A stretch of 62,592 bases of DNA. Source: Basidiobolus meristosporus CBS 931.73 (taxonomy: Eukaryota; Fungi; Basidiobolomycota). Under the pieces are notes generated by a model that was given only the letters and a program-made list of their open reading frames with translations, was not told where the DNA came from and did no database searches. A program made the position numbers and the translations under genes. This document shows positions 5,175-62,592 of the stretch, piece after piece. The DNA lies in the NCBI GenBank assembly GCA_002104905.1, contig MCFE01000523.1, positions 1-62,592 on the forward strand. The letters are read 5' to 3'. Positions within the stretch are counted from its first letter, which is position 1. Each line of letters begins with the position of its first letter.

Positions 5175-5321
5175 ATAGGGATAACAAGCATGTAGAATAG
5201 GCTTAGCACGGTCCCAATAAGTGTGCTAAGTTTGGGGCTGTTTGGATGACTTAGAGTATTTTCACCTAATATCAGGTACCCAGAACATGAAAATTTTCAA
5301 AGTAAATCCTGACAAGGAATG
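5175..5321 (-). repeat. Older copia LTR, left part (split by the 5322-8632 insertion; contains an internal micro-inversion)
   Basis: Matches the LTR consensus up to ...GACAAGGAATG and resumes at 8638 with TGGTCAGTG. Confidence 0.85.
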
Positions 5322-8300: not shown

Positions 8301-8632
8301 TGTCACCTGAATATTCATGCTAACTTAGTCACATAGATCTTATTCTGTGATTAGCATTCTGTCCTGACTAGATTTCTTGTCGGGATTTACTTAGAATATT
8401 TTCACCAAATTGTCAGGTACCCAGATTATTATTTTTCTCAAAGTCGTCCAAAAGACCCCAAACTTTGCACACATATTCTTGGGACCTTCCTTAACAAACT
8501 CTACACGTTTGTTTCCTCTACTTTATCAAAAGTATAAATACCATACTTTTGATCAATAAAGCTATAAGTGAATAACATGTAAATCCTCTAGTTCTCCACA
8601 TCACTTCCAATACTCCTCAGAATATTGCAACA
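5322..8632 (+). mobile_element. Non-autonomous LTR retroelement (LARD-like, 3.3 kb) with 349-bp LTRs at 5322-5670 and 8284-8632
   Basis: TGTTG..CAACA LTRs differing at 2 positions by eye. PBS at 5671-5687, PPT GAGTGGGAG at 8275-8283. 5-bp TSD GAATG at 5317-5321 and 8633-8637. No gag/pol motif recognised inside. Confidence 0.92.
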
Positions 8633-8637
8633 GAATG

Positions 8638-8724
8638 TGGTCAGTGTTTGCTAGGATTTGAAGTTAATGATCTAAGTGACTTAGTTAGGTGAGCATTTAG
8701 GTGCAATTACAAGCTTTTACAACA
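8638..8724 (-). repeat. Older copia LTR, right part
   Basis: Continues the LTR consensus to ...CTTTTACAACA. Confidence 0.85.
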
Positions 8725-9700
8725 TCTTAAGCTTACAGACCAAATGGAGGCCATCCTGGTCAGCACAAGCATCACACTGGTCCATGTTGATGTGGTCATC
8801 AAGTTCCCTGTTTAAAAATGCAGCTTCTTTGTATGTTTGGTAAATGAAAAACTTATGTTTGGCCACAATAGCCAATATTAATCTGATGGAACAAAACTTG
8901 GCTACAGGTGCAAAGGTTTCAGTATAGTCCAGTCCATTTGTTTGATAGTATTCATTGGCTACAAGTCCTGCTTTTGATCTTTTGATTGTACCATGAGCAC
9001 TATATTTTGTCTTAGTGACCCATCTGCATCCAATTGATTTGCAGTTGCTTAGTACCTTGACCAGGTGCCAAGCTTGATTTTCCATTAGAGCCTAATATTC
9101 CTTGGTCATTTCAGATCTTCATGACTTAGCTTAAGGACTATTAGGGGCCTTTTTCACTGTCTATGGCACATCAATAAGGACTGAATAGGTGCAGGCTAAG
9201 CTTGTGCCCTCATTTATATAATAATAGTGGCTATTTCTAACAAGGTTGAATCTTCAGCTTTATGGTACTGGAATGATTACATTAAGGATACTCCTGGGCA
9301 CTAATACTACCTAAAATACAGCTTTCAAGTCCTCTAGAGTGGGAGAGCTCATTGTTGTGTCTGATAGGATTCTAACTGTTGCTGGGCCAGAGATTGAATT
9401 TTTGTCATTACCCAGAGTGATTTTGTGAAATTTTGAATAATTTCATGAGATTTGTACAGGCAAGTGAAGAGCTTTGAGGTATATATAACATCATTGTCAG
9501 TGTATATTTTGCTGAATTTCTTACTATCTCCTCTCTCCACCATGGCTTCAGGCTCCCTGAACTTGGGCAGAGCTTCTTCCTTGCTCTCATTGAAGTAGAC
9601 CTGTGTGTTTCTTGTCCATAGTGAGCAACTATGATTAAATACTTCTTTTTACCTAGGGATAAATTTTGCATGGGTTCACATAAATCTGAGTGAGCCACAT
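8725..9700 (-). pseudogene. Deleted/decayed copia integrase and RT fragments
   Basis: AHSDLCEPMQNLSLG..KY (integrase) and SIGCRWV..LVA..GLDYTETFAPVAK (RVT_2). Collinear with the pol at 55915-58938 but with large deletions. Confidence 0.88.
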
Positions 9701-9817
9701 AAGCTTTTCCTGAATTTTGCCTAATCCAATGCTGCTGAATGGTTGACTGACTTTTTTTCCATATATCCAGGTTTCCAGTGGTCTAATCAGCTAGGAATCA
9801 GTTTTTAGTCTGGAAAT

Positions 9818-10162
9818 TACTGTAAATTTTATTATTGTATCTTAGTATACACTCCAATTGATTGCCTAGATCATTGTCTACAAGTGTTAGAATGTTATGA
9901 CTAAGCTGCTTGTTAGGATTTATGCCAGCTATTTTCAGCAAAATATTAGGTACCCAAGACATTAAAAATCTTGGGGTTGCTCAAACAGACCCAGACTTTG
10001 CATATAGGCTCTTAGGACATTCCTGACAATATTCTGTATTTTGTATTCCCAAAACTATGTAAAAGTATCAGTACTACTCTTTCAATCAATAAATCATTGA
10101 GTGAAAACAACAAAATCTGTTGTTTTTCAAACACTGACATTATCTCCTAAGCTTGTATAGCA
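9818..10162 (+). repeat. Degenerate copia LTR
   Basis: Patchy match to the LTR consensus (GGATTTA..ATTTTCA..AGGTACCCA..CAATAAATCATT..GTGAAAAC). Ends approximate. Confidence 0.65.
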
Positions 10163-13100
10163 ATTAGCTACTAGTGTTCCAATGATATTCCAACCATACT
10201 TTGTCAGCATTTGGCCAGTGCTTTTTCTTCATGCTTTTAGATGCAATTTTTGTTGGAAGTTGTTTGTTACTGATGACCAAGTTTTGTATGAGGACTGGTT
10301 GGCTTAATTACCTCATAGAAGATATGCCTGCATGTCTGCTAAATAGCTAGTATCTGAGATAATCAGGATTGTAAGTTTAGAGAAGCTTGGAATTTAGCAG
10401 ATATTATACTAGTATTCTACTGGCCTTTTATTAATTAATTTACTTGGGGTATGGTGTGGCAATGCAACTGCATTTGCTTGCTTTTCTATGGCTAACACTC
10501 TTCCTGCTATTGAATGTTTTCCTGATATGTGCTTAAAGTACACAATTGTACTTTCAACTTCACACACATGCTCTTGAGACCTTCCTATGCATAGTTAACT
10601 GTATATTCTACCACAGTTAAATAAGAGAGTAAACACAGGTTGTACATTCAATAGGTTGCTATGGGGGATTAGATGAACTATTTACTCTCCTGACTGTTTC
10701 TGGTATTTCCAAGTCTCCCACAATGCCACAATGTGTTCTACTGATAACAGTGTTGGCATTCTCTATATTACAGAGTTCTTGTTGAATCTTTTCAGCATTG
10801 GAAAACATTTGGAAGAGAAGTCCATATATCCAGCAGCTGTCTCATAACTTTTAATTAGCTAAAAGCTGTCAGGATTTATCTCCAGTGTCTTGAAGGTGTG
10901 CAATGAGTCAGCTTTGTCAAAGTTGTTCGCAAAAGGTTGCAAGAAGTTGCCAGCGGAGCCAAGGAGCTTTTGCATCCATATGCAAAATTCAGATTGTGAT
11001 TTGATGCACTAAGAAGCAAATGAATTTCCAATGTTGATTCACGTGTTGCACTTTGACATTGTACTTATGACTACCAAAATCATCCTGTTCCAATTGATAG
11101 GGTGTGGCTAAGCCCCAGTAAACATTTTGATCTTCGTTTTTCTGCGAGTTTATGCCGATATTCCTAGGCCTTCACTAGAGGCTTCTGATGGTACACCCAG
11201 GAAGCCAAGACGCCTAGTAGGAGAAACCCGAAAAGATGGAGTAGGTGGCTGATGTTGAAATGAATACTACGTAAACCGCCCGATGTCCAACTAATGGCGT
11301 ATTTAGATATCTTGCAGGTGCTCTGTGAAGATGAAACCTATAGTTCGCTTTTTATCCGGTCCACGGGGTTATTCTCTACAAGGCATCGATTGATAACTAA
11401 CCAGTGCATCAAATATGAAGGTGCATGCCAGATCATCAGCGGCATCATCCAGCAATGCTGCATTTGGCTCGATTGGTTACACAGCTGAAGTGGCCTGCAA
11501 GCATACTAGTGAGAATGAGACATGCCCCCGGATAAAATTGGATCTCAACACAGCTATCCCCACCTCGAATATTTCGGACCAATTCACGCTAGCCTATGGT
11601 GGCTTGTGGCACATGCAGTAGTAATCAAGAGTGAACTATTCATGATCAGAAGCAAATAAAACCCCTCCCTCGACTCTAATACCAACAGGATGGCACAGAG
11701 ATTCAGCGATCGCGGTCATTCGTGCCAATATTGCAAGACGCTGGCAAAAGAGTTGAAACGATTGTATCAGAGCCATCGGTGATGATCGGGAACCAACCCA
11801 ACGCCATCGAAGACACCTGGAATAAGACCCGGCCCACCTCAAGCTCAGAACCGCCTATGCCCCCTCTCCTCCAGCACCGAAATGTCCGAATGTTGGTCTT
11901 GGTGCCCAAAAAGAGTGTAGAGTGTTGCAGAATGAAGATCCGATGCGTGGCCGCCGCTTTCAGTGGATCGATCCATCTTGGGCAGCTGAGTACAAGAATC
12001 TCGGGATTCCAAGGGAACCGCGCCAACTCGATCAAAGATTCGCTCAAAGTGGACGAAAAAGGACTTCGTGAGGTGGTCTGGGCAGTTGCCATTCCTCCAG
12101 GGCGGAGAAGCCGACGAACAGCTGTAGCGAATTCCCAATCTTGGGCTTTGCCGAGACGGGGAAACACACCAATCGAGGTTACACGTATTTCAAATTCGAT
12201 TGCAAACTAATTACCGGCAACGAGGTGCATGCTCATTTTCCACCTTCGGGAATGCCAGGTCTCAGCTAGTGTTAGATGCAGGGAAGTCTCGCCCATCGTT
12301 TCGCGCCCTCTGCACACCGATCTGGAATCGCCCGGGGAACCTGGCTGCCACAGTGTCTAAGGAGTGCGATGGTGATGTGTCATTTGTAACGCCTCCTGAT
12401 CCCTTCATCCAAGCATTTGGAATCCACAAAGCCGAACCCTCCATCCAATCGACGTACACTGCGGCGGTGGGATCTCCAAGGTGGATGGAAACCAGGTTGA
12501 CGGCAATCGTGATCCTGCTTCCTACCCACATGTCGAGAAAGCATGGAGCGAGGCCATTTTCCAGCACAATTGCACAATCCAGAGCCGCCATATGGGGAGC
12601 GTTCAGATACACCACCTTCCTGTCTGGGAAGTGCTGAAGAAAGTGCGTGGGTTACATCTCAATCGAAGAGTCGTTGGGGAATACAGGCTAAACGATACTT
12701 ACGCGGAATGTCCACCTTAAGCCTAAGCAATGACAGTGGCCACCCGGTTGGATCAAGGTCAACTGTGAGCGGGATCCACTCATGATCAATTGCTTCCCTT
12801 GATTCATCAGGCAATCAGCTACGACAGTTGGGATTGGACGATCACCAGCCATCAATGGCTTTAAGTGGCCAAGATCTTGAGATGAGGCCGTAAGCGCATG
12901 CAGAGCCCCTTTCCATTGACTGATGATCATTCGCAGCAGAAGGATGCATAAGTGTAGCATCTCGACAGGTTCCTGGTATTTAGATGGAAAGCGCCTACTG
13001 GGCTGTGGGTTGAATTCTATTGACATGCAGTGCAAGGCCCTAGTTGATTGGCTTAACAGCGCCGCTTGCCCACTGAATATGCTTCGTCGGTTTACAGATG

Positions 13101-45602: not shown

Positions 45603-47192
45603 ATGGGTCTTCTGCAAAATCGATTTGTTAAAATCACAGCCATAACCATTGTGGTGGTTGGCCTCCTGTGTCTTATCATCATCACACCAATAGTCCAACA
45701 CGACAAGCATCATCGTCACGATGGAAAGGATTACAAAGAAAATGCCTCGATCGAGCTGAAGAATCACGCTACTAAGGAGAGCACCGCTTCGGCCGTATTC
45801 TCCAGCGCCAGCACAACCTCTGGCTCGGCATCCAGTACCGTGTCGAGCTCATCTTCCGCGAGTGCATCCTCAAGCTCCTCAACTTTGTCTTCGTCCTCCT
45901 CCACTTCTAGCACCCGCACCACCACCAGTTCTTCGGCCTCCCCTACACCCACGTACGCCAAGTGGATCGATGAGGACACTCCACAAGAGTTCCGAACCAA
46001 ATCCATTGGTGGACAGAACTTCACTCTGGTATTCTCGGATGAGTTCAACACACCTGGTCGCCAATTCGCCGAGGGTAAGGATCCCAAGTGGACTGCTGTG
46101 GACCTCTGGTATTGGCCAACAGACGATCTGGAATGGTACAATCCTGAAGCGGTGACCACCTCTGACGGAAGTATGAAGATCAGAATTACCAAGGAGCAGA
46201 TCAATGGCAAGGACTACAAGAGTGGAATGGTCCAAAGCTGGAACAAGTTCTGCTTTACCGGGGGAATACTCGAGGTCAACGTGTCGCTCCCTGGCAAGGG
46301 CAACGTCTTTGGCTTCTGGCCAGGCATTTGGACCATGGGCAACCTGGGCAGAGCCGGATATGGAGCCACCACCGATGGTACCTGGCCCTACACCTATGAT
46401 ACTTGTGACAGCGCCGTCGGTCCTGACCAGGACTTGCCATACAAGCTATCTAAGCTTCCGGGCCAGAAGCTCAACAAATGCGTCTGCCCAGGCCAAGACC
46501 ACCCCAACCCAGGAACCGGCCGTGGTGCTCCAGAGATCGATATATTTGAAGCAGCTGGTGCGTACAAACGGAGCGGCCTTGGCACTGTGTCCATGTCTGA
46601 CCAGATCGCCCCCTTCAACCACGACATGAAGGTGAATGAGAAGTTCGTCACTCTCTACAGCCCAGACGCCCATAAGAACTCTTACATTGGTGATCCATTG
46701 CAACAATGTGTCTCAGCCATCAACACTGTCCCCTTGGATGCCTACGAAGGCAAGGCTTTCCAGACATACTCGTTTGAGTATGTACCAGGACCCACCGGGT
46801 ACATCATTTGGAGAATCAATGATCAGCCCATTTGGAGACTGGATGCCGCAGCCATCGGACCTGATCCTATCTCCAAGGTGGCCCAAAGACTGATCAGTGC
46901 CGAGCCAATGTCGATTATCATGAACCTGGGATTCTCGCATTCTTGGGGCTGGCTTGATTTCTCGTTGATTGAGTTCCCTAGCACCATGTGGATCGACTAC
47001 GTTCGTGTCTATCAGCTTCCGGATAAGATCAACGTTTCTTGCGATCCCCCGGATTACCCAACCGCCAAGTATATCCAGCAACATCCGAATGCTTACAACA
47101 ACCCCACCCCTAGAACTTGGAAGGAAGCTGGGTACGAATTCCCCGCCTATAATGTCAACGGTGTCTGCCCCGGTACCAACAAAACTTTATAA
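45603..47192 (+). CDS. KRE6: KRE6/SKN1 protein, copy 2 (529 aa)
   Basis: Same motifs. Differs from copy 1 by one residue (V66F). Offset 4160 bp. Confidence 0.95.
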   Translation: MGLLQNRFVKITAITIVVVGLLCLIIITPIVQHDKHHRHDGKDYKENASIELKNHATKESTASAVFSSASTTSGSASSTVSSSSSASASSSSSTLSSSSSTSSTRTTTSSSASPTPTYAKWIDEDTPQEFRTKSIGGQNFTLVFSDEFNTPGRQFAEGKDPKWTAVDLWYWPTDDLEWYNPEAVTTSDGSMKIRITKEQINGKDYKSGMVQSWNKFCFTGGILEVNVSLPGKGNVFGFWPGIWTMGNLGRAGYGATTDGTWPYTYDTCDSAVGPDQDLPYKLSKLPGQKLNKCVCPGQDHPNPGTGRGAPEIDIFEAAGAYKRSGLGTVSMSDQIAPFNHDMKVNEKFVTLYSPDAHKNSYIGDPLQQCVSAINTVPLDAYEGKAFQTYSFEYVPGPTGYIIWRINDQPIWRLDAAAIGPDPISKVAQRLISAEPMSIIMNLGFSHSWGWLDFSLIEFPSTMWIDYVRVYQLPDKINVSCDPPDYPTAKYIQQHPNAYNNPTPRTWKEAGYEFPAYNVNGVCPGTNKTL

Positions 47193-47701
47193 GGAATATC
47201 TTTCCCGATATATAGAACTATTACTATTATAATATTCACTTTGTTTCCTATACACTATGTCCCACTACTCCTCAATCAATCGCTAAAGCTTCGCATAATT
47301 GTTGTCACATTACCCTCTATCAGCTCTTTATCCGTTAATTTTTCTATCCGTGATCAATTGACGAAAGTATTTTTATTCACGAAAGAGAAATAAAAATTAC
47401 AATACCAAGTAACTTCGGGGATTAGCAGTCCAAAGGGTACACTCACTGTGAGAATGCAGCCTTTAGTAATAAAGGTGCATGAAGAACTAGGTGAGGAACG
47501 CCGGTGTAGGAGAGATTGTTTGTAAACAATCGCGGAATTCCATGTTCATTATCACCAAAGATTCATAAAATGATAGCAAACTCTGAATTGAAATGTACTT
47601 GGGTATATTTTTATTAGTGATCTGATACGTTTTGGAGTACTCGAGGGTTATTATGATATTCACTTGCTTAGCTATCCTATAGGCCAGGTCTGGGTAAAAC
47701 A

Positions 47702-48045
47702 TGTTGTAAATTTTATATTTACCTAAATATTTCATTTACTTAGCTACTTAGATCAAAGTTTATGAACCTTACATTTTCTTGCCCAAATTCTTTGTTGTGA
47801 TTTACTTGGAATATTTTCACCAAAGTGTCAAGTACCCAGAACACGAGAACTCGATAAGTTGTCCAAGAGCCCCCAAGCTCTGCACACTTGTTGTTGGGAC
47901 CTTCCTAGTTATTTTGTATATAATTGCTCCGTCAGAACCATGTCAAAGTATAAATATCACCTTTACGTTCAATAAATCATTAATTGAAAACCACATAATC
48001 TACCTATTTTCCCAATTACTTCATAATATACTAGCTCTCACAGCA
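47702..48045 (+). repeat. Solo copia LTR (near-TSD AAACA/AAGCA)
   Basis: TGTTGTAAA..CAGCA ends. Alignable to the LTR consensus throughout. Confidence 0.8.
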
Positions 48046-48477
48046 AAGCACACACGGTGAGCATGGCCAAGGAGTTCACGAGAGCACATGGGCAATAGTT
48101 GGAGCTGTTTATACACTTTTGGTATCTAGTGTTTGGGAGTAATTACTCCAAGTAATCCCTGTTGAAAAGCCATTTTTTGCACGAATCCATTTTTGGTTAT
48201 TACTGTTATGATTATTTGGTAGAACGCTTAAATCAATCAATAGTTTAAGTTTTGACTTATCTAATTGAGATGTTTGCAATCGTTGACTATAGTTTTAGTT
48301 CATTAGTATGCCAGAAGTTATCCAAACTATCGGCCTCATCAAAATGCTCCAAACTTTGTCCATCACTTCTGTAAATCGTGTTCTCCATCTCTCTATCCTA
48401 ACGGAGTTGTATAGTAGAGTTGAGTAACAGACTTGTTCCGTTGGATAGTGCCACATAGTGACAGATCAATTGGGCAC

Positions 48478-48823
48478 TGTTGTGAATTTTGTAATTACAC
48501 CTGAACATTCACCCAACTTAGTGACTTAGATCCTTGTCTACGAATCTTTGAGAAATTTGATGTTCTGAGCACCTGCTTTTTGGTGAAAATATTCTCAGTA
48601 AATTCCGACAAGGAATTTGGCCAAAATTCTCTAAGCTGTTCAAGCAGCCCCAAACTTTGCACACATGTTCTTGGGACCTTCCTAAACATATTCTACGTGC
48701 TTGTTTTGCTAAGATCATGTAAAAGTCTTTTTACTACTCTACATTCAATGAATCATTATGTGAAGACCACATAATCTAGTTGTTCTCCCAATCACTTTCA
48801 ATATCTCCAAAAATCTTACAACA
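48478..48823 (+). repeat. Copia LTR with an internal 90-bp inversion
   Basis: TGTTG..CAACA ends. Flanks match the consensus in one orientation and 48546-48635 in the other. No TSD. Confidence 0.85.
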
Positions 48824-49069
48824 ATCTCAACAAAGAGTAAAGCTCATAAGTAGAGACTTAAGTGACCAAATGTTTAAGTATTATCTGAAATATAGACCTA
48901 TAGTACCAAACAGTGAAAGGACTGTTGTGTTCATTCAAAATTTGAAATTCATGTATGGTGCTTGTACTTCTGAGTAAGTGATGTAGGATATACTATAGGA
49001 TCTCTATGATAGCCATTTCCAGGTGCTGTCTTCAGATTTTGAGATCTTGTGGGCTCTAGTGCTTTTGCG

Positions 49070-49412
49070 TGTTGAAAATTTTGTATTTACACCTAAGTAT
49101 TCGCCTTACCAAGTTACTTAGAGCATTACATACAGGTCTTAGAGAATTTTAGCCCAAATTCCTTGTTGGGATTTACTCGGAATATTTTCACCAAAACATC
49201 AGGTACTCAGAACATGAAGTATCTCAAAGTTGCGCAAGCAGCCCCAAACTCAGTATACATACTCTTGGGACCTTCCTTAGCACATTCTATAGGCTTCCTA
49301 GATAAAATGTACAAATAAATGCAACTATTACATTCAATATAACAATTAAGTGAAAAGCACCAACCTACTAGTTCTCCCAATCACTTCCAATTTCACCAGA
49401 ACTCTTACAACA
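49070..49412 (+). repeat. Solo copia LTR (near-TSD TTGCG/TTGCT)
   Basis: TGTTG..CAACA ends. Collinear with the consensus. Confidence 0.85.
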
Positions 49413-51863
49413 TTGCTATATAGTGCTAACCAGCATTGATATTGTTATGAAAAAGGGTGACATCAGAAATTGTAAGTAATTAGTCACCAATATATTTCCG
49501 GTCAACATTACATTTTGGTTTGGTTATGGCAGTGGCTGATATTTTGAAGTCTTCTAGTTACTGCTCAAGGATTTGCAAGGGTGCAGCACAGTACTGTTGG
49601 TATTTCATCACAATAGCATTATACTTTTGCTGTATATTCAACTAGGAGTGTCATGTCATTGAGGGAAGAAAGTGCAAAGACCTCATGATCCAGTCAACAC
49701 AAAATGCATATTACTTTTATGTAGATCAATGTCACCATTGCTCCCTACAAAATTATCAAACAGAGGGCACATTCTATCAAATGTGGGGAACCGTTCCAAA
49801 TTCCTGCATCTTTGAATTAGCAATATAGTTGTATCAGAGATCAACACTGCTTACACTATCACATGGATAAATAAGATATGGGATTGGCAAAATTACTTCA
49901 AATGGTCTAGTGATTGTCTGAAGTGTAGGCCATATTGTAGGCCAAATGACAAAAATCAACCAAGCAACCATTGTCTTCCCATTATTTAACAAATATTCCC
50001 AAACTGAAATCACTGAGATATTGCCGGATTAGCAAGCAATTGCTGTTGCGCTATTTCACAAGATTTTTCTATATGATGCTCTTGATGAAAACATGGCGAA
50101 ACAACCCATCAACAAAAGGAGCAATATTTCTTGGGTCACTACTCTATTGGGAAGATATCCCACTGTCAATAGCTTATTCTAATTTCTAATTGGAGACTTC
50201 GCATATATCTTTTGCTCAACAACGGGGCCAAATTTCTCAGAAGTTGCTGATGCTCATATCAGTACCACATGAGACATATTTGACTAGTAGCTGAGTCATT
50301 AGAGAATACCAACACATCCTCCCATAACTGCCCACTATTTCCTAAAGGTTGAACGGCATTACTTGCGCCGGTTTTCTTTGCAGATTACTCTCTAAACGAG
50401 CTACAGTGGGGTATCATACATGCCAAGAGAAAACATCAGATTAGGTACCAAAGGAATCTGGAGCTTTCAAGGTAGTCACAAGCCTACTTTTTCAATATGT
50501 ATTTATTGTGCTGAATACTGCGAGATAGAATCTTGATTAAGTGATTATAATAAGGAACCCGTAGCTTAAATTAGTTCAATCACAGCTGGAGCTTGGGAAC
50601 ACACATTTCGCAGAGAATGGTGAGGTAAACGAGCAGCTAAGGATACCGCTTAGATTTTCAATATCCCATTCACAGTACTATTTGAAAAAGTGACTTTCAC
50701 AATTCGAATGTGCAATTGACTGACAATAGCGGCTTTGCAGTTGGGATTGTTGCAATAATTTCATGGCCATCAACGTCCATATATAGCCTTGGAATTATTA
50801 ACAAGTGTCCAATAAAAGAGGCCAGATATGCCCTTACTTGTAGCAGCTCCCAATAAAAAGCAGCGGAGTATTTGGATGGTTGATTGTTCATCTATGTATA
50901 TGATATTTTCGTTGATGATGAAGACCACAGAACATACCTCTCTGTAATGGACGGGAGAATACGCCTAGGGCTTGATCAGGTTTCTGGTAGGAGGGAAATC
51001 CTGAGTCATTGTTGGGCGTGGTCAGAAGACTCCGATAAGCATAGACTCAATAAGACGCTATTGATGATTGTTCGACTATAAATGAACTCGGTCTAACGCT
51101 GTGCTTCTTGAAAAGCCGGGTTGTTCAAGAGCAAGTACCCCACCAAATCTAGCTTCCCTTGTAGTAAAAACACTCAGCTTACTGCTGTTTTTTTTTGGAA
51201 AGCTGAAGCTCTCTGGAACAGGAAATACAATAAGTAGAGCTTCTCCTACAATATACCAAAGAGCTTTACTGGCGTGTCGTACTCCTTGCAATCACTTTCA
51301 GTTCGGTTGTTCAAATATGCCAATACTAAGGTCACCATAGTAGGGCGTACTTGTGAGATAACAAGCTATTGGATAATCTACTATAATTAGAAGCCACTAA
51401 ATCATTGACTTGTGGCGCCTAGCTATAGCTTCCTCCAAAACAAATTCTGGCCCTCTGGAAATCTATCAAGGCTTCAAAGCGGCAGTCTGGTTGTTGGTTA
51501 AAGTCGACATAAAGAACCATATCGTCGACATAAGAAAGGGCGACTCTCCTGTATCTCCGTAAACAATAACCTTTTCATAGGCTGACTATTTCCTGAAGGT
51601 TAAACATCTTTAGCTATGCCAGATTTACTTTAGTAAGTGTTGCCTAATATTAATTTCACTAACATATGAGTACTAATTAGACTTCAAGAGAAACGGTTCC
51701 AAAACTACTCTACAATTATTGGTGGGACAAAGTGCACCTAAGATGGGGTATATAATTTACGCGAAATCGTTGCGATCAATTGATAGTATCAACGAATTCA
51801 GTGCATGGGGAGCCAAGTGAGTAATGTAATAGTTGTGATTCTATGCATCTGGAAAAGTATTCC

Positions 51864-53393
51864 TTATAAGGTTTTGTTGGTGCCGGGGCAGACACCGTTG
51901 ACATTATAGGCGGGGAATTCGTACCCAGCTTCCTTCCAAGTTCTAAGAGTGGGGTTGTTGTAAGCATTCGGATGTTGCTGAATATACTTGGCGGTTGGGT
52001 AATCCGGGGGATCGCAAGAAACGTTGATCTTATCCGGAAGCTGATAGACACGAACGTAGTCGATCCACATGGTGCTAGGGAACTCAATCAACGAGAAATC
52101 AAGCCAGCCCCAAGAATGCGAGAATCCCAGGTTCATGATAATCGACATTGGCTCGGCACTGATCAGTCTTTGGGCCACCTTGGAGATGGGATCAGGTCCG
52201 ATGGCTGCGGCATCCAGTCTCCAAATGGGCTGATCATTGATTCTCCAAATGATGTACCCGGTGGGTCCTGGTACGTACTCAAACGAGTATGTCTGGAAAG
52301 CCTTGCCTTCGTAGGCATCCAAGGGGACAGTGTTGATGGCTGAGACACATTGTTGCAATGGATCACCAATGTAAGAGTTCTTATGGGCGTCTGGGCTGTA
52401 GAGAGTGACGAACTTCTCATTCACCTTCATGTCGTGGTTGAAGGGGGCGATCTGGTCAGACATGGACACAGTGCCAAGGCCGCTCCGTTTGTACGCACCA
52501 GCTGCTTCAAATATATCGATCTCTGGAGCACCACGGCCGGTTCCTGGGTTGGGGTGGTCTTGGCCTGGGCAGACGCATTTGTTGAGCTTCTGGCCCGGAA
52601 GCTTAGATAGCTTGTATGGCAAGTCCTGGTCAGGACCGACGGCGCTGTCACAAGTATCATAGGTGTAGGGCCAGGTACCATCGGTGGTGGCTCCATATCC
52701 GGCTCTGCCCAAGTTGCCCATGGTCCAAATGCCTGGCCAGAAGCCAAAGACGTTGCCCTTGCCAGGGAGCGACACGTTGACCTCGAGTATTCCCCCGGTA
52801 AAGCAGAACTTGTTCCAGCTTTGGACCATTCCACTCTTGTAGTCCTTGCCATTGATCTGCTCCTTGGTAATTCTGATCTTCATACTTCCGTCAGAGGTGG
52901 TCACCGCTTCAGGATTGTACCATTCCAGATCGTCTGTTGGCCAATACCAGAGGTCCACAGCAGTCCACTTGGGATCCTTACCCTCGGCGAATTGGCGACC
53001 AGGTGTGTTGAACTCATCCGAGAATACCAGAGTGAAGTTCTGTCCACCAATGGATTTGGTTCGGAACTCTTGTGGAGTGTCCTCATCGATCCACTTGGCG
53101 TACGTGGGTGTAGGGGAAGCTGATGAGCTGGTTCTAGAGCTTGTGGAGGACGAAGACAAAATTGAAGAGCTTGATGACACCATGGTTGAAGCGGAACTTG
53201 CGGTGGCACTGGAGCTTTCGCTAGTATAGTGGTTCTTCGGCTGGATTGAGGCATCGTCTTTGTAATCCTTTCCATCGTGACGATGATGCTTGTCGTGTTG
53301 GACAATTGGTGTGATGATGATAAGACACAGGAGGCCAACCACCACAATGGTTATGGCTGTGATTTTAACAAATCGATTTTGCAGAAGACCCAT
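51864..53393 (-). CDS. KRE6: KRE6/SKN1 protein, copy 3, inverted (509 aa)
   Basis: Catalytic domain identical to copies 1/2 except P->L near the C-terminus. Shorter, different Ser-rich stalk. Confidence 0.95.
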   Translation of the reverse strand: MGLLQNRFVKITAITIVVVGLLCLIIITPIVQHDKHHRHDGKDYKDDASIQPKNHYTSESSSATASSASTMVSSSSSILSSSSTSSRTSSSASPTPTYAKWIDEDTPQEFRTKSIGGQNFTLVFSDEFNTPGRQFAEGKDPKWTAVDLWYWPTDDLEWYNPEAVTTSDGSMKIRITKEQINGKDYKSGMVQSWNKFCFTGGILEVNVSLPGKGNVFGFWPGIWTMGNLGRAGYGATTDGTWPYTYDTCDSAVGPDQDLPYKLSKLPGQKLNKCVCPGQDHPNPGTGRGAPEIDIFEAAGAYKRSGLGTVSMSDQIAPFNHDMKVNEKFVTLYSPDAHKNSYIGDPLQQCVSAINTVPLDAYEGKAFQTYSFEYVPGPTGYIIWRINDQPIWRLDAAAIGPDPISKVAQRLISAEPMSIIMNLGFSHSWGWLDFSLIEFPSTMWIDYVRVYQLPDKINVSCDPPDYPTAKYIQQHPNAYNNPTLRTWKEAGYEFPAYNVNGVCPGTNKTL

Positions 53394-54578
53394 TGTGAAA
53401 TGAGCGAATATTGAATGGAAGACTTGTCTTGAGCATGTGAAGGTACCCTCGCTTGACTTATATACAAATCGCTCACTTATATTAGCGTTCCATTCCTAAG
53501 CTGCCACTCGGCAAGCACATTTTTGGAATGGCCGTCGCAAATTTAAGGGTACGTGATCTTTTCAGCCACCTGCAATTTGTTTTTCGTAAGCTTTCGCTGC
53601 CAGTTTTGTACGTTATCTACTAGTGTAATGTAGCGATAGGATACTATAAATAAATCAATCACAGTTCTTGGCGATATTGTCGAGAGTAGACATATCATAG
53701 CTGGTTAATATGATGGTGCTTGCCTCGTCCGCACACCTACCACTTCCTAAACTGCCGATTTCTACTAATCTGGATAGTCACACTATATTAATCTGGTTTG
53801 GTACATTTTTGGTCTAGACTGATTTCTACTTTGTCAATGACTGGCGCGATTGACTCTACCGAATCGACATTTTGTGATCGGATACATCGTGGATGCCTAT
53901 CTACCATATTTGCTCATTACCGAGAATATGTATATTTCCGTATTTGAAAACGTAATCATTATATCAATATTGACCTTGGAGTCTATGCATTGAGGATGGC
54001 AACGGCGTTAAGTTGGTATTGCGAGCTAGAATAGTAAGACTAAATACGCGAACGTGTTTATGTGTTTCTAAAGACAATCTATTAATTGTTAAAAACATAG
54101 GTACAACAGATTCGTTTTTGGCACAGGGGAAATAGCATTGGTGAAGTCAACAAGGTCTATCATTGTGCTAATTTTGGCTCTGGAAACTATATCGCTGACA
54201 ATAGTTATGATCCCATATCGCTAAGAGACCCAGATTAAGACGACTGAAGATGTGGGTGTGTTTGTATGCCCCCAAAGGCAGCGTAGCAATAGATCAAAAT
54301 GTGAATTTTATAGCTGTGGCTGTGGCAAACTGGTTGATTAACGAGTGGCTAAATTGTTAGCCTCAAGCTATTTCACTACAATGATCCAAGCAGGGGATGG
54401 AAGTAGTGCCTCCACTGTTTCAGTTGAGTAAGCAAATGAGCTTGGTGACCAATCAATATTATTTATCAATACCAAGCTTGGCTATGCTCACAACACCATA
54501 CACAAGCTATTTGAAAATTAAATATTTAGCATACAAGTGCTTCTGTTATGGTATTTAGAGTGTAGGTATTATAGTAAG

Positions 54579-54630
54579 TGCTGTAAGAGTCTTGGAGATA
54601 TTGGAAGTGATTAGGAGAACAAGTAGATTA
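54579..54630 (-). repeat. 52-bp LTR end fragment abutting a full LTR
   Basis: TGCTGTAAGAGTCTTGGAG..AGTAGATTA is directly followed by TGTTGTAAGAG. Confidence 0.85.
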
Positions 54631-57600
54631 TGTTGTAAGAGTCTTGGAGATATTGGAAGTGATTGGGAGAACAAGTAGATTATGTGGTTTTCACTTAATG
54701 ATTTATTGAATGTAAAAGTAGTATTTATACTTTTACCTGGCCTTGGCATTACAAACACGTAGAATAGGTTAAGGAAGGTCCAAAAAACATGTGTGCAAAG
54801 TTTGGGGCTGTTTGGACAACTTTGAGAATTTTCATGTTCTGGGTACCTGGTATTTTGGTGAAAATATTCTAAGTAAATCCCAACAAGGAATTTGGTCAGT
54901 ATTCTCTAGGACTTGAAGGTAATGATCTAAGTGACTAAGTTAGGTGAATATTTAAGTGGAAATGCAAATTTTTACAACACTCCCACTCAGCTAAATGCTC
55001 ATACTGACTAGTCCTAATTTTGACCTCAGATATTCAAACTTGTCTCTAGCTAATGGCTTGGTAAATATGTCTGCAATCATTTCATCTGTAGGACAGTAAA
55101 CTAAGCTAACTAAGCTATTCTCTATAGCTTCACGTATGAAATGATGTCTAATATCTATGTGCTTGGTTCTGGCATGAAAAGTTGGATTTCTACCTAATTG
55201 TATACATCCTTGATTATCTTGAAATAAAGTAATAGGCGTTTTTTGACATAGGCCGAAATCTGTAAACAGCTTTCTTAACCACATTGCTTCTTTTGTAGCT
55301 TCACAGGCTGCCATATACTCTGCCTCTGTGGTGGAAAGTGCAATGGTTGGTTGTTTTCTTGAATTCCATAAAAATGCTCCTTTGCAGTAAAGAAAGGTGT
55401 ATCCTGTGGTGGATCTTCTGTCTTCTAAATTTTGTCCCCAATCTGCATCAGAGTATCCCACAGGATCTTGTTCTGAGTCCTTATAAGTGTATATTAAGCA
55501 AATATCAGCAGTTCCTTTTAGGTATCTAAAAATCCACTTAACTGCTGCAATATGATCAGATCCATAGTTCTGATTATGTTGGCTGACAACTCCCACTGAA
55601 TATGAGATATCTGGACGTGTTCCAAGCATGATATACATCAGACTGCCGACCATAGATTGATAAGGAAAGTCAGGGCTTTCAGATGGCACCAAGCTCTCTT
55701 GATTTGGTTGAGTTTTGACCAAGTTAAGGTTTGTCTCCATTGGGGTAGCTGCCGGTTTACAGTCTTCCATTTTGTACTTCTTTAGTATATCTTGAATATA
55801 CTTGGATTGGCTTAGGGTAATAGTCTGGGTACTTCTGTCTATGGAGAACTTAATCCCTAAGTAGTAACTAAGTTCTCCTAGATCGGACATCTTGAACTCC
55901 TTAGATAGGCTGGATTAAGTCTCTTCCAATGTTTCTAGGTTATTGGTGGCTATAATAAGATCATCCACATATAGAGCTAATAGAACTGGATTTGCTCTAT
56001 CTGGCTTATAGTATATACTATAGTCAGCATTACTCCTTTTGAAACTCAAAGAATCCAAATTAGAATCTATCTTGCAATTCCAGGCTCTTGGTGATTGTTT
56101 GAGACCATATAGTGACTTTTTAAGCCTGCAGACCAAATGGGGGTTATCTTGGTCAACAAACCCATCAGGCTGGTGCATATACACGTCCTCATCAAGTTCT
56201 CCATTCAAAAATGCAGTTTTTACATCCATTTGATGAATAAAAAACTTATATTTGGCTGCAATAGCCAATATTAATCTGATGGAATTAAACTTGGCTACCG
56301 GTGCAAAGGTCTCAGTATAGTCAAGTCCTTTTGTTTGAGAGTATCCTTTGGCTACAAGTCTTGCTTTGTATCTTTCAATTGTACCATCAGCCTTGTATTT
56401 TGTCTTGAAGACCCATCTGCGTCCAATTGATTTTTGGTTGATTGGTAATTTGATTAAGTCCCAAGTTTGATTTTCCATCAGTGCCTGATATTCCTCAGTC
56501 ATTGCAGATCTCCAAAACTTTGTCTGAGGGCTATTTAGGGCCTCTTTTACAGTCTGGGGTTCACCAATATGGACTGAATAGGCATAGGCTAAGTTTGTAC
56601 CCTCATTAATATAGTAATTTGGGCTATTTCTTGTCCAATTTGATCTCCGGGCATTTGATACTGGAATGATCACTTCTGGGATATTCCTGGGCACTGATTC
56701 TGGCTGAACCATGGTTGTAGAGTCCTCTGGAGAGAAAAAGCTTTAATTGTTTTGCTCTGATTCAATCCTGACAATTGGTGGACTTGGGACCAAATTTTCA
56801 TCATCATCTGATGTCATTTTTTGTGAAAATTTTGAATTTTCATCAAACAACACATCCCTGGACTTGATAAGCTTCTTTGCTTTGGTATTGTAGAGTCTGT
56901 ATGCCTTATTCTCATTGCAGTAGCCCAAAAATATGCATTTTACACTTTTTGGCTCAAATTTTGACTGATTTCCAGCCAGTTTTTTGGCATATGCTGTACA
57001 CCCAAATATTCTTAGATGTTCTGCACTTGGTCTGTATCCATACCATGCTTCAAATGGAGTAGAATCACAAAGTATTCTGTTATAACTCCTATTTTTAAGA
57101 TGTACAGCAGTGGCAACTGATTCCGCCCAAAAATCATAGGATAATTTTGTTGTAAGAGTCTTGGAGATATTGGAAGTGATTTGGAGAACAAGTAGATTAT
57201 TTGTTTTTCACTTAATGATTTATTGAATGTAAAAGTGGTATTTATACTTTTACCTGCTCTTGGCATTACAAACACGTAGAATAGGTTAAGGAAGGTCCCA
57301 AGAACAGGTGTGCAAAGTTTGGGGCTGTTTGGACAACCTTGAGAATTTTCATGTTCTGGGTACCTGGTATTTTGGTGAAAATATTCTAAGTAAATCCCAA
57401 CAAGGAATTTGGTCAGTATTCTCTAGGATTTGAAGGTGATGATCTAAGTGACTAAGTTAGGTGAATATTTAGGTGGAAATACAAATTTTTACAACAAATT
57501 TTTGATCATGGATCATAGATCTTGCCATATCAATTATTGATCTGTTAGCTTGTTCTCCTACTCCATTTTGCTGTGGGGAGTATGGTACAGTAGTCTCTTG

Positions 57601-59065
57601 CTTTATCCCATGAATTTTGCAGAAGTGGATGAAGAGTTTTAAGGTATATTCTCCACCATGGTCAGATCGTATTTTCTTGATTTTTTTACCAGTTTCTCTC
57701 TCCACCATGGCTTTAAACTCCCTGAACTTAGACAGAGCTTCTTCCTTTCTCTCCATGAAGTAGACCCATGTGTATCTTGTATAATCATCAATAACAGTGA
57801 TTAAATACTTCATCCCGCCTAAGGATAAATTTTGCATAGGTCCACACAGATCTGAGTGAATTAGATCTAATTTTTTCTTAGTTTTGATTAACCCAGAGCT
57901 CTTGAACAGTTGTCTGGCTTGTTTCCCATATATGCAGGCTTCACAGTGCTCCAAATTAGCTGGGGGATCAATTCTCACTCCAGAAATTAGCTGATCTTTG
58001 ATCATTTTGCGCAAATAATCAAAATTGATGTGCCCAAATCTCCTGTGCCAAAGCATTGGTGTTTCTTCATTTAAGTTACTTATATTGGCTTCCAGATATA
58101 ATGGAATATAAGTCAACTTGTATAGATTCTGATCTCTGATGTCCAAAGCAATATGAGCACCATTTTGATCAGTGATCCTGCATCCAGAATTGTCAAAACT
58201 GAAACTGAGTCCTTCTGCTGTGGCCTTGCTTACAGAGAGTAGGTTCTTGGCTATTTCTGGTACATAGAGTACTTCTTTAAAGGTCAGTGTATGGCTTCCT
58301 TCACTGCTTCTAAGGTTTACTTCAATAGTTCCTTCTCCCACTGCATCAAGTGTTCTATCATCACCCATGAAAACCTTCTTAATTGGAATTTCTTGATATT
58401 GGGTAAAAAGTTCTTTTTGGTGTGTAAAGTGTTGAGAAGCTCCAGAGTCAATATACCATGTCTGAGAATCCTTGTTTGTGGTCATATTTAGTGCAGATAT
58501 GAATAGTCTATCTTCAGTTGTTGCAGCATTTCCATATTCAGGCTTCTTTTGCTGATAATCTCTGTTCTTGAGACACCGGTCTGATGTGTGTCCTTTCCTT
58601 TTGCAGTAGTTGCAAAATAGGTTGCTGTTGCCTTTGTAGGGTCTTGGGTACCTCCTTTGTTGGTTATCATTGCTTATTAAAGCATTTTCTTCTTCCTTCT
58701 TATTGGCGCTTGATTTTCTTAATTCTTCATCCAGGAGCCTTCCATATACATAATTTAAGGTCAAATCTTCAGTTCTGGACTCTAGGGCTGATACAAGGCC
58801 CTGAAACTTGTCTGTCAGGCTATTCAGGATGGTAACTATCACATCCACATCAGTAGTTGGTACACCTACAGATTCCATCTCATCTACCAGCAGGGTAGTT
58901 CTGTTAATTAGATTTTTCATTTCTTCTCCCAGCAGCATCTATGTTGTAAAGAATTTTTGTCTCAGATACATTTTCTTGGCAGCTGAACATGCCTGGCAGG
59001 TGTCTTCTAGTGCTTTCCAGGCATTCTTTGCCATTTTTGCTCTTGAGCATTGAATTAGCAATTTG
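54631..59065 (-). mobile_element. Ty1/copia retrotransposon, disabled: 3' LTR 54631-54979, PPT 54980-54988, gag-PR-INT-RT-RNaseH 54991-59065; 5' end displaced by insertion
   Basis: CNYCKRKGHTSDRC zinc knuckle, WYIDSGASQH protease, LWHRRFGH..CEAC GAG-pre-integrase and HSDLCGP..QQNGVGE integrase. RT LYVDDL and RNaseH YSDADW..STTEAEY..DNQG..KHIDIRHH follow in copia order. In-frame stops at 55915, 56743 and 58939. Confidence 0.97.
57148..57496 (-). repeat. Solo LTR of the same family inserted in the integrase gene
   Basis: 349 bp, about 14 differences from 54631-54979 by eye. Perfect TSD AATTT (57143-57147 / 57497-57501). Removal restores DQK|LSYDFWAE. Confidence 0.95.
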
Positions 59066-59985
59066 GTTAGGGGGAGGGAAAGTCACCAAAGTAGGTGAAA
59101 TCTTTATTTGATTTCAGACAAGTCTAACTACAAATAAAGAAGCCAGCTGGGAATAGAAGATTCCCAAAGTAAACACTAAGTTGAATATGAATAAATCTAA
59201 GCTAAAGTTAAGGCAGTATCCCAAAGTACACTGGAGTTCAGGTTCATGGGGGAGTGAAGCAGATAAGCTTGAGAGATATAATAATCTTTTAAGAAGTGGG
59301 TAACAGCAGGTGAAGGGGAGTTTTTGATAAGTGAAGTGAATCTTAGGGTTAGGGTTCTAGTGCTTTATTGGGAAATTTGCACAAAAAGTGCAACCTTGAA
59401 ATATGACAAAGTCATATAAGTATAGCAACTAATGTAAAATGATAACTACTTTGCCAGTAAAAGGGGTGAAGGAAACTGTAAAAGCTATAAAGGAAAAGCT
59501 GTGGACACAAGAAATTTACAGTACCATTCATTACCCTACATTGCAAGTAAGCTGAAGGAACATAAGGGGAAGCTTTAACAGACTGAACTAAAGAATCTTG
59601 CTCCATATCACAAACGAAACAATGAGGACTGCGGAAGCTTTAAAGGAAACAAAAGTTTCCATAGTGATGGCCTACCAGGAAATCCACAGAAGCATTCACT
59701 GATCCAACAGAAGGAAACAAGAGGCTAGAGTAATGTCATCAAAAGAAAATGAACCAGAAGCTGAAGATCAGGCACATACACCAAGTCCAATTATGCCAAA
59801 GGAAGCTGCAGAAGCTTGAAAGGAAACAGAAAGTCTCCATTGGGGTGACACCAGGGGAAATCCACAGTCAGCCCTTTACATCACCAGAGGTGGGCAGTGT
59901 CTGAAAGAAAGGAAAGAAAGAGTAAAAGAAAAGGGAAGGAGAGAAGAAAAAAGGAAGGAGGGAAGAATGGGGTGGGTGGGTGGGA
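59066..59985 (-). mobile_element. Non-coding element sharing its 3' terminus with the LINE (SINE-like/non-autonomous or highly diverged truncated LINE)
   Basis: Homology to gag stops at 59065 (compare 285-305). Shares GCTGGCTTCTTT, AATAAAGATTTCACC..GGTGAC and CTCCCCC with 60403-60460. Confidence 0.65.
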
Positions 59986-60404
59986 AATCTTATAGGTGAA
60001 GGATCTTGTCAAAGATCACATCACTAGGTTAGGGGAGATTGTTAGGGAAGGAGCATCAGGTCAGAAGACCCAATCTTATAGGTGAAGGATCTTGTCAAAG
60101 ATCACATCACTAGGTTAGGGGAGATTGTTAGGGAAGGAGCATCAGGTCAGAAGACCCAATCTTATAGGTGAAGGATCTTGTCAAAGATCACATCACTAGG
60201 TTAGGGGAGATTGTTAGGGAAGGAGCATCAGGTCAGAAGACCCAATCTTATAGGTGAAGGATCTTGTCAAAGATCACATCACTAGGTTAGGGGAGATTGT
60301 TAGGGAAGGAGCATCAGGTCAGAAGACCCAATCTTATAGGTGAAGGATCTTGTTAAAGATCACATCACTAGGTTAGGGGAGATTGTTAGGGAAGGAGCAT
60401 CAGG
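59986..60404. repeat. Tandem array of an 86-bp unit, ~4.9 copies
   Basis: Unit starts at 59986, 60072, 60158, 60244 and 60330. A single C>T variant at 60354. Confidence 0.97.
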
Positions 60405-62592
60405 GGGAGACAGTCACCAACAGGTGAAATCTTTATTTCAGTTGAAACAAAGAAGCCAGCGCTACTGTTGTAGCTTTGATACAAGAGTGTGTAGCTGAGG
60501 GGAATTTGTAGGTAAGTTAATAAGAAGTGATGATAGCTCTTCAGTGCTCAAGACACTGTTCAGTGGGAAGGGGGGTAGCAAGAGAGGTAAGAATGACTTG
60601 TGAACAACATTAATGAGGGGAATGTGATAAGGATTGATATTCATCATAAAGGGAGTGTGCTGCTGCAGATATTGCTGCCAAAGATCTGTCAAGTACTTCA
60701 GGTAGGCCAGCTTGGGTTTTTCTGACTGCAGAATAAAGTGAGCAAACTTCTTGACTTCAGGATCTCCAAGTATAGTTCTCCAGCAGGAGCCAGGTGTTGT
60801 GTGGTGTGTTCTCTTCCAGGCCTTAATCAGTGGGTTGTTGCAGTTGTGAAGTCTGAGGTATAATCTGGTTCTAAGGTAGAGAAGTCTGATCTTATAGGGC
60901 ATAAACCCAAAAGCACCAAGAATAGCATGTCTGTAGGGGCATTCAGGCAAATGAGGCACCAAGGAGGTAATGCACCAAACTGCAAACTTGTCAAGCTTAG
61001 TGCAGTCTCTAGAAGTAAGAGAGAGAAGTGGTAAGCCAAATTCCAGGACAGGGAAGACAAACTGCTTGAGTAGAAGGAGGCAGCTGGGAGCTGAAGTTGT
61101 AGGAGGAGTAACAGCCAACAGCTTGTGGAGTGCCTGTCTTGCAAGGATAATTCTCTTCTTCAGGTGTGCTCCAGAGTCTAGTCCAGTAGGAAGGAAAGGA
61201 AAGCCAAGATATGTAGCAGAAACCTGAGCAGGTAGAGTGGAGTTCTCCAAGTTGATGGGAGAGCCCAAAGGTACTGTCTTTGCAATGGAAAGCTGGAGAT
61301 TATTCTTCTGCAGATACTGGTGGATGGTCTGGGAATCTTGTTGCACATTGGAGGAGGATATTCTGATGTCATCAGCAAAGAGAGTAACCAGGCAGTCAGC
61401 TGAGAGTCTTGGGAAGTCATTCAGGAAGATGGCAAACAGTATAGGACCAAGCACAGAGCCTTGAACCACTCCATTAGGAACTGAGAACACAGCTGATTGC
61501 TCACTTGGGTGCAGAATTCTTGCTTGTGGATCCAGAAACAGAGACCTGACAAGGAGGGTGAGAGAGGTACTGGAGAAGCATTGCAACTTGGACCAAAGCA
61601 GATTTCTGTCAACTGAATCAAAGGCCTTAGTAATATCAAACAGAACAGAGGGATACTTGCACTGGAGAGAGTGATCTTGGCTAAGTATGACTGCATATTC
61701 CAAGGAGAGGCCAGGAACAAAGCCAAACTGTGCAGGATGAAACTTGAGGGAGTCAGAGTAGAGCTCCTGAGCAAGCAGAAGCTCAAACACCTTTCTGCAG
61801 GTGGGCAGCAGAGATATTGGCCTATAGGAGCTAGGATCCAGGTGCTTTCCTTTACCCTTGTACAGTGGCAGAACATTTGCAAAGGACCATTCCTCAGGAG
61901 TAGAAAGCTGGGCTGAGCATTGCTGAAACAGTGGAAGCAGAAGTGCAGACATGGCCTTGGTACTAGTCTTCAGAAGCTCATAAGAGATTGTGTCCACACC
62001 TGGAGCAGTAGAGTAGGGAAGCCTCTTGAGCACATTATGGATTCTCCTTTGATCAAGTGCAAGTGGGATGGGCAGAGTCTTGAAGTCAGGATGAAAGCCA
62101 GGAGTTGAGTACTGCTTTGTAGAGAAGAAGATGTTAGCCAGCTGTTCTGTTGAAGGTAACTTCCTGGAAGAGGGCCTCATTGCTCTGTAGAGTCTTGATA
62201 CTGTTCTTGTTATAGAGTTGGAAGATTGCAGAGGCAAAGAACTCATAATATGATCCCAGAGCTGAGTATGCAGAGTGTGGTGAATTGCCTTGGAGTGGTG
62301 TATTGCTGTCAGGAGGAGTTTCTCTGTTTTTGGGTTAGGGAAACTCAGGTAGCTTTGTTGCAGGGCTGAAACAATGGATTCCCATTTTCTTGAGGTAACA
62401 GCAGTAGTCTTGCAGGGCAGTGAGAGGGAGGCAGACACCAGAATCAGATGCTTCACAAAGAGCCAGGCATAGTTGAGATCATCTGGCAGAGAAAGTAGCA
62501 AACTGGCAAGCTTCAAGTAGTTCCCAAAGTCTTTCTTCTGATTCTTGGTAGCTTTGTGGGTGAGCACAGTAAGTTTGGCAGCTTCTTCTTCA
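60403..62592 (-). mobile_element. Non-LTR (LINE-like) retrotransposon 3' part; RT ORF 60462 to beyond the window edge, uninterrupted
   Basis: APGVDTI, ANVLPLYKGKG..SYRPISLL, QFGF, DITKAFDSV, GVVQGSVLGP, FADD and YLG are non-LTR RT domains 0-7. The frame stays open to base 62592. Confidence 0.95.

Follow-up and report, generated by a model that had tools for sequence, protein, structure and literature searches.

Absence of CpG dinucleotides from a predicted telomere-repeat-tailed LINE of Basidiobolus meristosporus and from its closer relatives

The stretch of DNA analysed here (the window, 62,592 nucleotides, positions 1 to 62,592 of contig MCFE01000523.1 from Basidiobolus meristosporus CBS 931.73) ends in a retrotransposon copy. 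Positions 60403–62592 are predicted to carry, on the minus strand, the reverse-transcriptase half of the second open reading frame (ORF2) and the 3′ module of a telomere-repeat-tailed long interspersed nuclear element (LINE) of this fungus, here called family 1. The coding part of the copy does not contain a single CpG dinucleotide. A preliminary description of the same DNA had named the element an intact LINE. The class stands, but the element appears to be of the telomere-repeat-tailed type, and it is not intact within the window. The window end truncates the frame some 10 residues past the point where the endonuclease domain stops in its relatives, which leaves that domain and ORF1 outside. 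The features of the element are listed below, where L011 and L012 stand for MCFE01000244 and MCFE01000090, two contig ends elsewhere in the B. meristosporus assembly.

60462..62592, minus strand: C-terminal 709 codons of ORF2 and the stop codon of a predicted telomere-tailed retrotransposon without long terminal repeats (non-LTR; family 1), with zero CpG (reading frame, Pfam and counts)
61197..61835, minus strand: reverse-transcriptase domain, residues 253–465 of the in-window frame, with FADD at 405 (Pfam RVT_1, E 1.7e-25)
60403..61199, minus strand: stretch common to six 5′-truncated copies at the L011 and L012 contig ends, 93–99% identity (sequence comparison)
60403..60461, minus strand: 3′ untranslated module with AATAAA, a short stem and a C-run, conserved across the clade; it holds the only CpG of the element (60460–61)

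Over 60462–62592 (2131 bp), a script counts 0 CpG where 106 are expected from the C and G content. The preliminary description had reported the same zero, with GC at about 46% and some 100 CpG expected, and these estimates are close to the computed 46.1% and 106. The stretch has 121 GpC, and its observed-to-expected ratios (o/e) are 1.21 for TpG and 1.55 for CpA. The CpG-free run extends over 60461–62592, and the closest CpG, at 60460–61 as first described, lies one base past the TAG stop codon (60462–64, minus strand). The probability of finding no CpG in 60462–62592 is ~e^-106 from base composition, and even with the low CpG content of transposon DNA in the window (o/e 0.12) as the reference it is 3e-6.

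From the window end to the TAG, the minus-strand frame runs for 709 codons without a stop, which agrees with the more than 700 open codons with a reverse transcriptase reported earlier. The Pfam RVT_1 match spans profile positions 6–204 of 205 and includes the FADD catalytic motif. All 26 arginines are encoded by AGA (20) or AGG (6), as had been deduced from the lack of CpG. NCG codons are absent, and C·G codon junctions (the dot marks the codon boundary) number 0 against 37 expected. The sense strand of 60465–62591 (minus strand) and all related LINE ORFs are also poor in G (17% G, 29% C), and the amino acids with G-starting codons (Gly, Ala, Val, Asp and Glu) make up 19–23% of the LINE proteins versus 26–32% in copia and most host proteins. 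Because LINE families that keep CpG are G-poor too, this is a compositional trait separate from CpG loss.

The nearest named proteins are gene models of B. meristosporus CBS 931.73, which match part of the query at 98% identity or, for a second family, show 64%. Three SKN1/KRE6 genes in the window are consistent with a fungal host. Ten full-length relatives (L001–L010) were found in public assemblies. They carry an ORF1 of 434–500 amino acids with a coiled-coil-like stretch upstream of ORF2, whose reverse transcriptase is preceded by a diverged endonuclease domain. The solved structure nearest to the reverse transcriptase is human L1 ORF2p (E 9e-16, query P0003). The endonuclease region of P0007 gives a borderline match to Exo_endo_phos_2 (27.5 bits, cut-off 27.4), and that of P0003 and L001 reaches 23 bits with Exo_endo_phos, below the cut-off of 24.5. 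A profile of this N-terminal domain has no match among solved structures. Its GDLN..HPEN and SDH motifs are conserved among the relatives and, together with the weak Pfam matches, suggest that the domain is an APE-like endonuclease. A regular-expression scan of the window ORF, P0003, P0004, P0005 and P0007 found none of the motifs of a restriction-enzyme-like endonuclease (CCHC ... RHD/N ... E ... R/KPD, as defined in PMC12857005).

The relatives have no poly(A) and no LTRs. In L004–L009, the conserved 3′ module (AATAAA, short stem, C-run) is directly joined to TAACCC repeats. At the opposite end, a conserved 5′-terminal motif, TACGCATTTTGAT, contains a single CpG (L004:546, L005:74 and L009:149), which is retained by otherwise CpG-free elements of two diverged lineages. 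Functional constraint at the start of the element may explain why this CpG is kept.

The two other contig ends, L011 and L012, hold six 5′-truncated family-1 copies with differing truncation points, 93–99% identical to the window copy. They are arranged head to tail with CCCTAACCCTAA between them, within 5–13 kb of the contig ends. The near-identical 5′-truncated copies (97–99%) point to recent activity of family 1. When the C-terminal 200 residues were used for a word search, no more family-1 copies turned up at E 1e-20, and the seven usable copies, from three loci, are too few to give a decay rate for family 1 itself. The surroundings of the window copy comprise the following features.

59986..60404, no strand assigned: 86-bp tandem array, 4.9 units with 99% matches, CpG-free, adjoining the 3′ end of the LINE copy
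59343–59354, same orientation as the neighbouring LINE fragment: two-unit telomere repeat (sequence)
59065–59344, minus strand: 3′ fragment from a second family of telomere-tailed LINEs, sharing 97.5% identity with two L012 copies

The 3′ end of the window copy (60403) thus adjoins the 86-bp array and not CCCTAA repeats as in the other copies; the nearest telomere repeat is the two-unit one, 1 kb further on. The array contains CCCTAAC-like motifs, and the second-family fragment is preceded by TTAGGGTTAGGG. Along the minus strand, the order is the LINE copy, the array, the two-unit telomere repeat, the second-family fragment and a copia element. All features between 54991 and 62592 share the minus-strand orientation, as would be the case in a one-way stack at a chromosome end. 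From this arrangement, the end of the chromosome would be expected past position 62592.

The absence of CpG is not peculiar to the window copy; it is common to the whole clade and appears to be inherited within this lineage. L001 and L002 (80% protein identity), L003 (65%) and L004–L008 (64%) have 0 CpG in ORF1 and ORF2, where 88–238 are expected per ORF. The possibility that the family is CpG-rich and that the window copy alone lost its CpGs, raised as a check in the preliminary description, is therefore not what is found. More distant elements contain some CpG: L009 (61% identity) has 3 in ORF2 and 12 in ORF1, and L010 (49%) has 13 in ORF2. The last three CpGs of L010 are an assembly artefact outside the element, as L010:3827–3852 is an Illumina adapter. 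In the non-coding parts of the clade (5′ region, spacer and 3′ module), there is 1 CpG against 75 expected. Protection of the reading frame from CpG mutation as the sole cause is ruled out, the untranslated regions and spacer being equally empty.

Between CpG-free lineages, the ratio of nonsynonymous to synonymous divergence (dN/dS, Nei–Gojobori) is 0.09–0.2 and dS exceeds 1.6, i.e. is saturated. Because of these values, the relatives are best described as old, separately evolving lineages that are predicted to be functional and under purifying selection. The alignment has 24 columns with at least three arginines, 21 of them inside the part covered by the window. At these 21 conserved positions, the CpG-free lineages have almost exclusively AGA or AGG, and the outgroup L010 has CGN at nine. 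The arginines of the clade thus appear to have been recoded and not lost. Within L004–L008, the element differs at only 2–8 sites between the five contigs, which gives no power for a polymorphism test.

These comparisons bear on the simplest account, in which a single copy decayed in place and its frame stayed open by chance. Only a change of CGA to TGA makes a stop, and a few percent of copies could remain open. However, independent lineages at 64–80% identity are equally CpG-free with open frames, their conserved arginines are kept as AGR and did not turn into Cys, His, Gln or Trp, and dN/dS is 0.09–0.2. Single-copy decay was rejected on these grounds, as it had been in the preliminary description, and it is hardly credible for this element.

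The remaining DNA of the window provides the background. Two copia stretches serve for comparison.

54991..58938, minus strand: copia element with three long ORFs, CpG o/e 0.09–0.21
8507..10928, minus strand: broken copia remnant, 2422 bp without CpG against 81 expected, which is the longest such run in the window; largest ORF 122 amino acids

The host genes in the window have a CpG o/e of 0.66–0.97, in agreement with the free use of CpG that had been noted for them. Transposon DNA is depleted, with an o/e of 0.119 at 1–11000, 0.175 in the copia region and 0.037 at 59000–60402, and per-kb values range from 0 to 0.27. The longest CpG-free run is not in the LINE; it is the copia remnant at 8507–10928, which is rearranged and ~75% identical to the copia element at 54–59 kb. 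Because this run is in a broken element, CpG-freeness alone is no mark of activity. The earlier view of an active lineage purged of CpG under selection holds in so far as copies at 97–99% identity exist, the clade lies below the passive equilibrium (see below) and some purge is likely, but its use of CpG-freeness as the sign of activity does not. The loss is likewise not special to the LINE, given a transposon o/e of ~0.12 and the CpG-free copia remnant. Sister LINEs with open frames keep an o/e of 0.1–0.2. The preliminary description had named equal freedom from CpG in all transposon families as a refuting outcome; all transposon DNA in the window is CpG-poor, but the telomeric LINE family 2, copia and the other LINE are not at zero.

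These CpG-keeping elements have open frames. The copia ORFs have an o/e of 0.09–0.21, and the family-2 telomeric LINE of the same genome has 0.10–0.13. Another non-LTR element, at L011:7874–10870, has an open frame of 998 amino acids that is 26–28% identical to the telomeric LINEs, a CpG o/e of 0.22 and 18 CGN arginine codons. The residual CpGs of such elements are mostly in CGN arginine codons (6 of 9, 9 of 13 and 18 of 28), and their C·G junctions are nearly gone (1/34, 1/41 and 4/41). This bias is the order of loss expected if a mutational drive is slowed only where the protein would change. One genome therefore holds family 1 at an o/e of 0, family 2 at 0.1, another LINE at 0.2 and genes at 0.8.

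The rate of CpG mutation in this host can be estimated from pairs of copies. Two family-2 copies (98% identical) differ by transitions at 6 of 22 CpG positions versus 20 of 1827 others, a ratio of 25. Pooling three independent transposon pairs gives 17/56 at CpG versus 56/3492 elsewhere (ratio 19). In gene duplicates, the counts are 41/704 and 150/7071 (ratio 2.7), and the contrast between transposons and gene duplicates is significant (Fisher p = 1e-7). The duplicates are the three KRE6/SKN1 genes (window 40999–53132) and the repeats of a CHAP-domain gene (L012:10595–18769), with 92–98% identity over 0.8–3 kb. Because both sets keep normal CpG, with CpG transitions at 2.4–2.9 times other sites, the drive is aimed at transposons and not at duplicated DNA as such.

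The loss depends on context. In transposon-rich DNA (window 1–11000 and 54001–60402), the o/e is 0.055 for TCG, 0.115 for ACG, 0.18 for GCG and 0.20 for CCG, and in genes (11001–38000) TCG is the least depleted CpG context, at 0.97. The process is not ascomycete repeat-induced point mutation (RIP), a conclusion already drawn in part by the preliminary description from the abundance of CpA. The CpA-to-TpA signature is absent (CpA o/e of the element 1.2–1.55), and the trigger, duplication of any DNA, is not seen to operate, as 92–98% identical gene duplicates are not hypermutated. A homology-dependent, RIP-like mutator could instead hit CpG in any repeat, and the highest-copy family hardest. The TCG-biased loss does resemble that of Pucciniomycotina repeats (PMC3318451), but tandem or nearby gene duplicates keep their CpGs with only the slight acceleration given above, and such a mutator is a very improbable cause here.

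We infer that transposon CpGs decay by deamination of 5-methylcytosine (5mC) laid down on transposons. A published inventory of methylation genes (source data of PMC10538959) lists for B. meristosporus DNMT1 (ORX99839), two Dim2-type enzymes (ORX98566 and ORX84408), a UHRF1-like protein and HELLS, but no DNMT3 or DNMT5.

In a neutral simulation, a CpG excess rate of 25-fold leads to an equilibrium o/e of 0.124, a 65-fold rate to 0.051 and a 200-fold rate to 0.018. An excess of 19–25-fold, as measured, is thus enough to explain the background level of transposon DNA (0.12) as well as family 2 and copia. It does not account for the family-1 clade. Among the synonymous sites of the clade, NNC·G is found 0 times versus 548 for NNT·G (implied excess >209), and NCG 0 times versus 424 for NCA (>172). 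The pooled sister LINEs have 5 NNC·G versus 340 NNT·G, with an implied excess of 63–77 per element from 1–3 counts each, and 14 NCG versus 245 NCA (18). The other LINE and copia have 4 versus 94 and 6 versus 108 at NNC·G and NNT·G (implied excess 20 and 16) and, pooled, 9 NCG versus 215 NCA (16). In host genes, the corresponding counts are 231 versus 216 (1.6) and 118 versus 159 (2.2).

At the 972 synonymous sites of the clade, a 25-fold rate would leave ~44 CpG (P of zero = 1e-19) and a 65-fold rate 17 (P = 3e-8), but none is observed. The clade also differs from the sister LINEs directly, at NNC·G (0/548 versus 5/345, Fisher p = 0.008) and at NCG (0/424 versus 14/259, p = 1e-6). The test has less force for the window ORF by itself, which should hold ~10 synonymous CpG if the rate is 25-fold (P = 3.5e-5) and ~4 if it is 65-fold (P = 0.015). 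The contrast is maintained between family 1 and family 2 within the same terminal stacks of B. meristosporus (L011 and L012), and between L006 and L010, which come from one sequencing sample (ERR14042384). The clade is at least ten-fold below the passive equilibrium, in coding and non-coding parts alike, and an extra force is therefore needed.

That force could still be mutational. If family 1, or masters located at chromosome tips, were methylated far more densely than other transposons, decay might be at least 200-fold and the equilibrium close to zero, with no selection. The decay is indeed real and transposon-specific, transposon CpG varies widely from one kb to the next and reaches 0 of 81 expected in the dead copia remnant, and the non-coding parts are as empty as the coding ones, as a mutational cause predicts. 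However, family-2 copies in the same terminal stacks retain an o/e of 0.10–0.13, and at 200-fold the ORFs of the clade should still contain ~6 synonymous CpG, but none is seen (P = 0.0035). The behaviour of new CpGs also speaks against so high a rate. The 3′-module CpG (60460–61) occurs in the 5 young copies, the 2 older ones having CA in its place, and the master probably gained it recently. Dead family-1 copies have acquired 4 new CpGs among ~115 substitutions. These new CpGs have survived 0.2–1.2% private divergence, which fits a 25-fold loss better than a 200-fold one, although the numbers are small. Mutation alone is on balance an unlikely explanation, if one with real weight.

The same survival of CpGs in dead copies would be expected if CpG were stripped at each copying, by sensing of CpG in RNA or by editing of RNA or cDNA in CpG context, with dead copies spared. 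The purge is strongest in the family with most young copies and spans the whole transcribed unit, dead copies gain and keep CpGs, and the composition of the sense strand shows a strong skew (C 29%, G 17%). Against this, no evidence was found for such a system in fungi, host mRNAs make free use of CpG, and sister LINEs with the same life cycle keep theirs. A process of this kind is improbable.

The explanation favoured here combines a recoding of the lineage with selection against CpG-bearing masters, the selection step being the less direct of the two; we put its probability at about 0.45–0.5. The host would methylate transposon cytosines, and deamination of 5mC would drive CpG decay there. 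Purifying selection would let only harmless changes pass, namely NNC·G to NNT·G, NCG to NCA and CGR to AGR, and the lineage would gradually be recoded with its arginines and reading frame retained. Passive decay of this kind would yield the o/e of ~0.1–0.2 of sister LINEs, copia and transposon debris. On a replicating lineage, an extra force would act in addition: masters that bear CpG would be disfavoured, either through methylation and silencing or through a faster decay of their progeny.

A more specific form of this reading is that the telomere-tailed LINE clade has been directly selected for having no CpG, such that the DNMT1/UHRF1 system is left with nothing to mark or mutate; we advance it tentatively, as rather doubtful in this strict form. 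The total absence of CpG could mean that the element has evolved an escape, or that an element assisting in the rebuilding of chromosome ends is tolerated as an exemption. Silencing routes other than CpG are possible, since the host has Dim2-type enzymes.

Several points weigh against selection as the cause. The CpG-free copia remnant is dead, so the decay of CpG differs from place to place in the genome and may locally run to completion without selection. The rate estimates rest on 6–17 events that are unpolarised and come mostly from families other than family 1, and the equilibrium model is simple. For the window copy taken alone, the probability of zero is 0.015 to 0.25 at a 65–200-fold rate. 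The 5mC status of B. meristosporus is left blank in the source data of PMC10538959. Finally, the hosts of L001–L010 are presumed to be Basidiobolus relatives from the 49–80% protein identity and the common telomere-stack structure.

If the clade is indeed directly selected for zero CpG, the dinucleotide content of a transposon would be the adaptation itself, held below mutational equilibrium for a very long time. A retrotransposon clade that is active and stands at zero CpG over 4–5 kb, across saturating divergence and with essential arginines kept, would be an extreme case, and the contrast within one genome could be used to test whether transposon composition adapts to host methylation and mutation defence. 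CpG loss in methylated transposons is textbook knowledge, and 5mC biology has been little studied in early-diverging fungi. Literature searches that combined Basidiobolus and CpG, 5mC or transposable elements turned up no account of a CpG-free retrotransposon trait, those on CpG-free retrotransposons evading methylation found nothing relevant, and no published description of a fungal telomere-targeting LINE with an APE-like endonuclease was found. What is new is the degree and persistence of the loss, which is total, extends over the whole element and clade, lies below the passive equilibrium of the genome and occurs in a phylum without a prior report in the searchable literature.

The architecture of the element resembles that of TRAS1 and SART1, the telomere-repeat-specific APE-type LINEs of Bombyx mori. 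Both have two ORFs, an N-terminal APE-like domain (in the case described here, predicted in the relatives) followed by the reverse transcriptase, a 3′ end on telomere repeats in fixed orientation, and head-to-tail stacks of 5′-truncated copies at chromosome ends. Unlike TRAS1 and SART1, the present element is fungal, lacks poly(A) and runs at its 3′ end straight into the complement of the telomere repeat, and the endonuclease domain of its relatives is very diverged. To our knowledge, CpG-freeness is not a described feature of TRAS and SART elements. Fungal non-LTR elements associated with telomere repeats at chromosome ends are also known, such as MoTeR, FoTeR and Cnl1 (PMC12857005). These belong to the CRE-like clade and carry a C-terminal restriction-enzyme-like endonuclease, whereas here no such motif is present and the relatives have a putative N-terminal APE-like domain.

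With respect to composition, vertebrate 5mC deamination offers a close parallel, with TpG and CpA in excess, CpG transitions that are faster by an order of magnitude and an o/e that settles at ~0.1–0.25. We know of no vertebrate L1 whose coding regions are CpG-free; the clade described here lost every CpG while, as it appears, staying functional. The nearest fungal precedents are the TpCpG hypermutation of repeats in Pucciniomycotina (PMC3318451) and, in Microbotryum, the paucity of risky TCG sites in transposon lineages (Hood 2005, as cited in Horns 2012, PMC3318451). As in the present case, the loss is limited to transposons and biased to TCG, and lineages are depleted of the target sites of the mutational process of their host. 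The present clade differs in that it is found in Basidiobolomycota and that its depletion is complete, with 0 CpG against ~700 expected for the clade, affects all CpG contexts and the non-coding parts, and lies below the passive equilibrium of the same genome.

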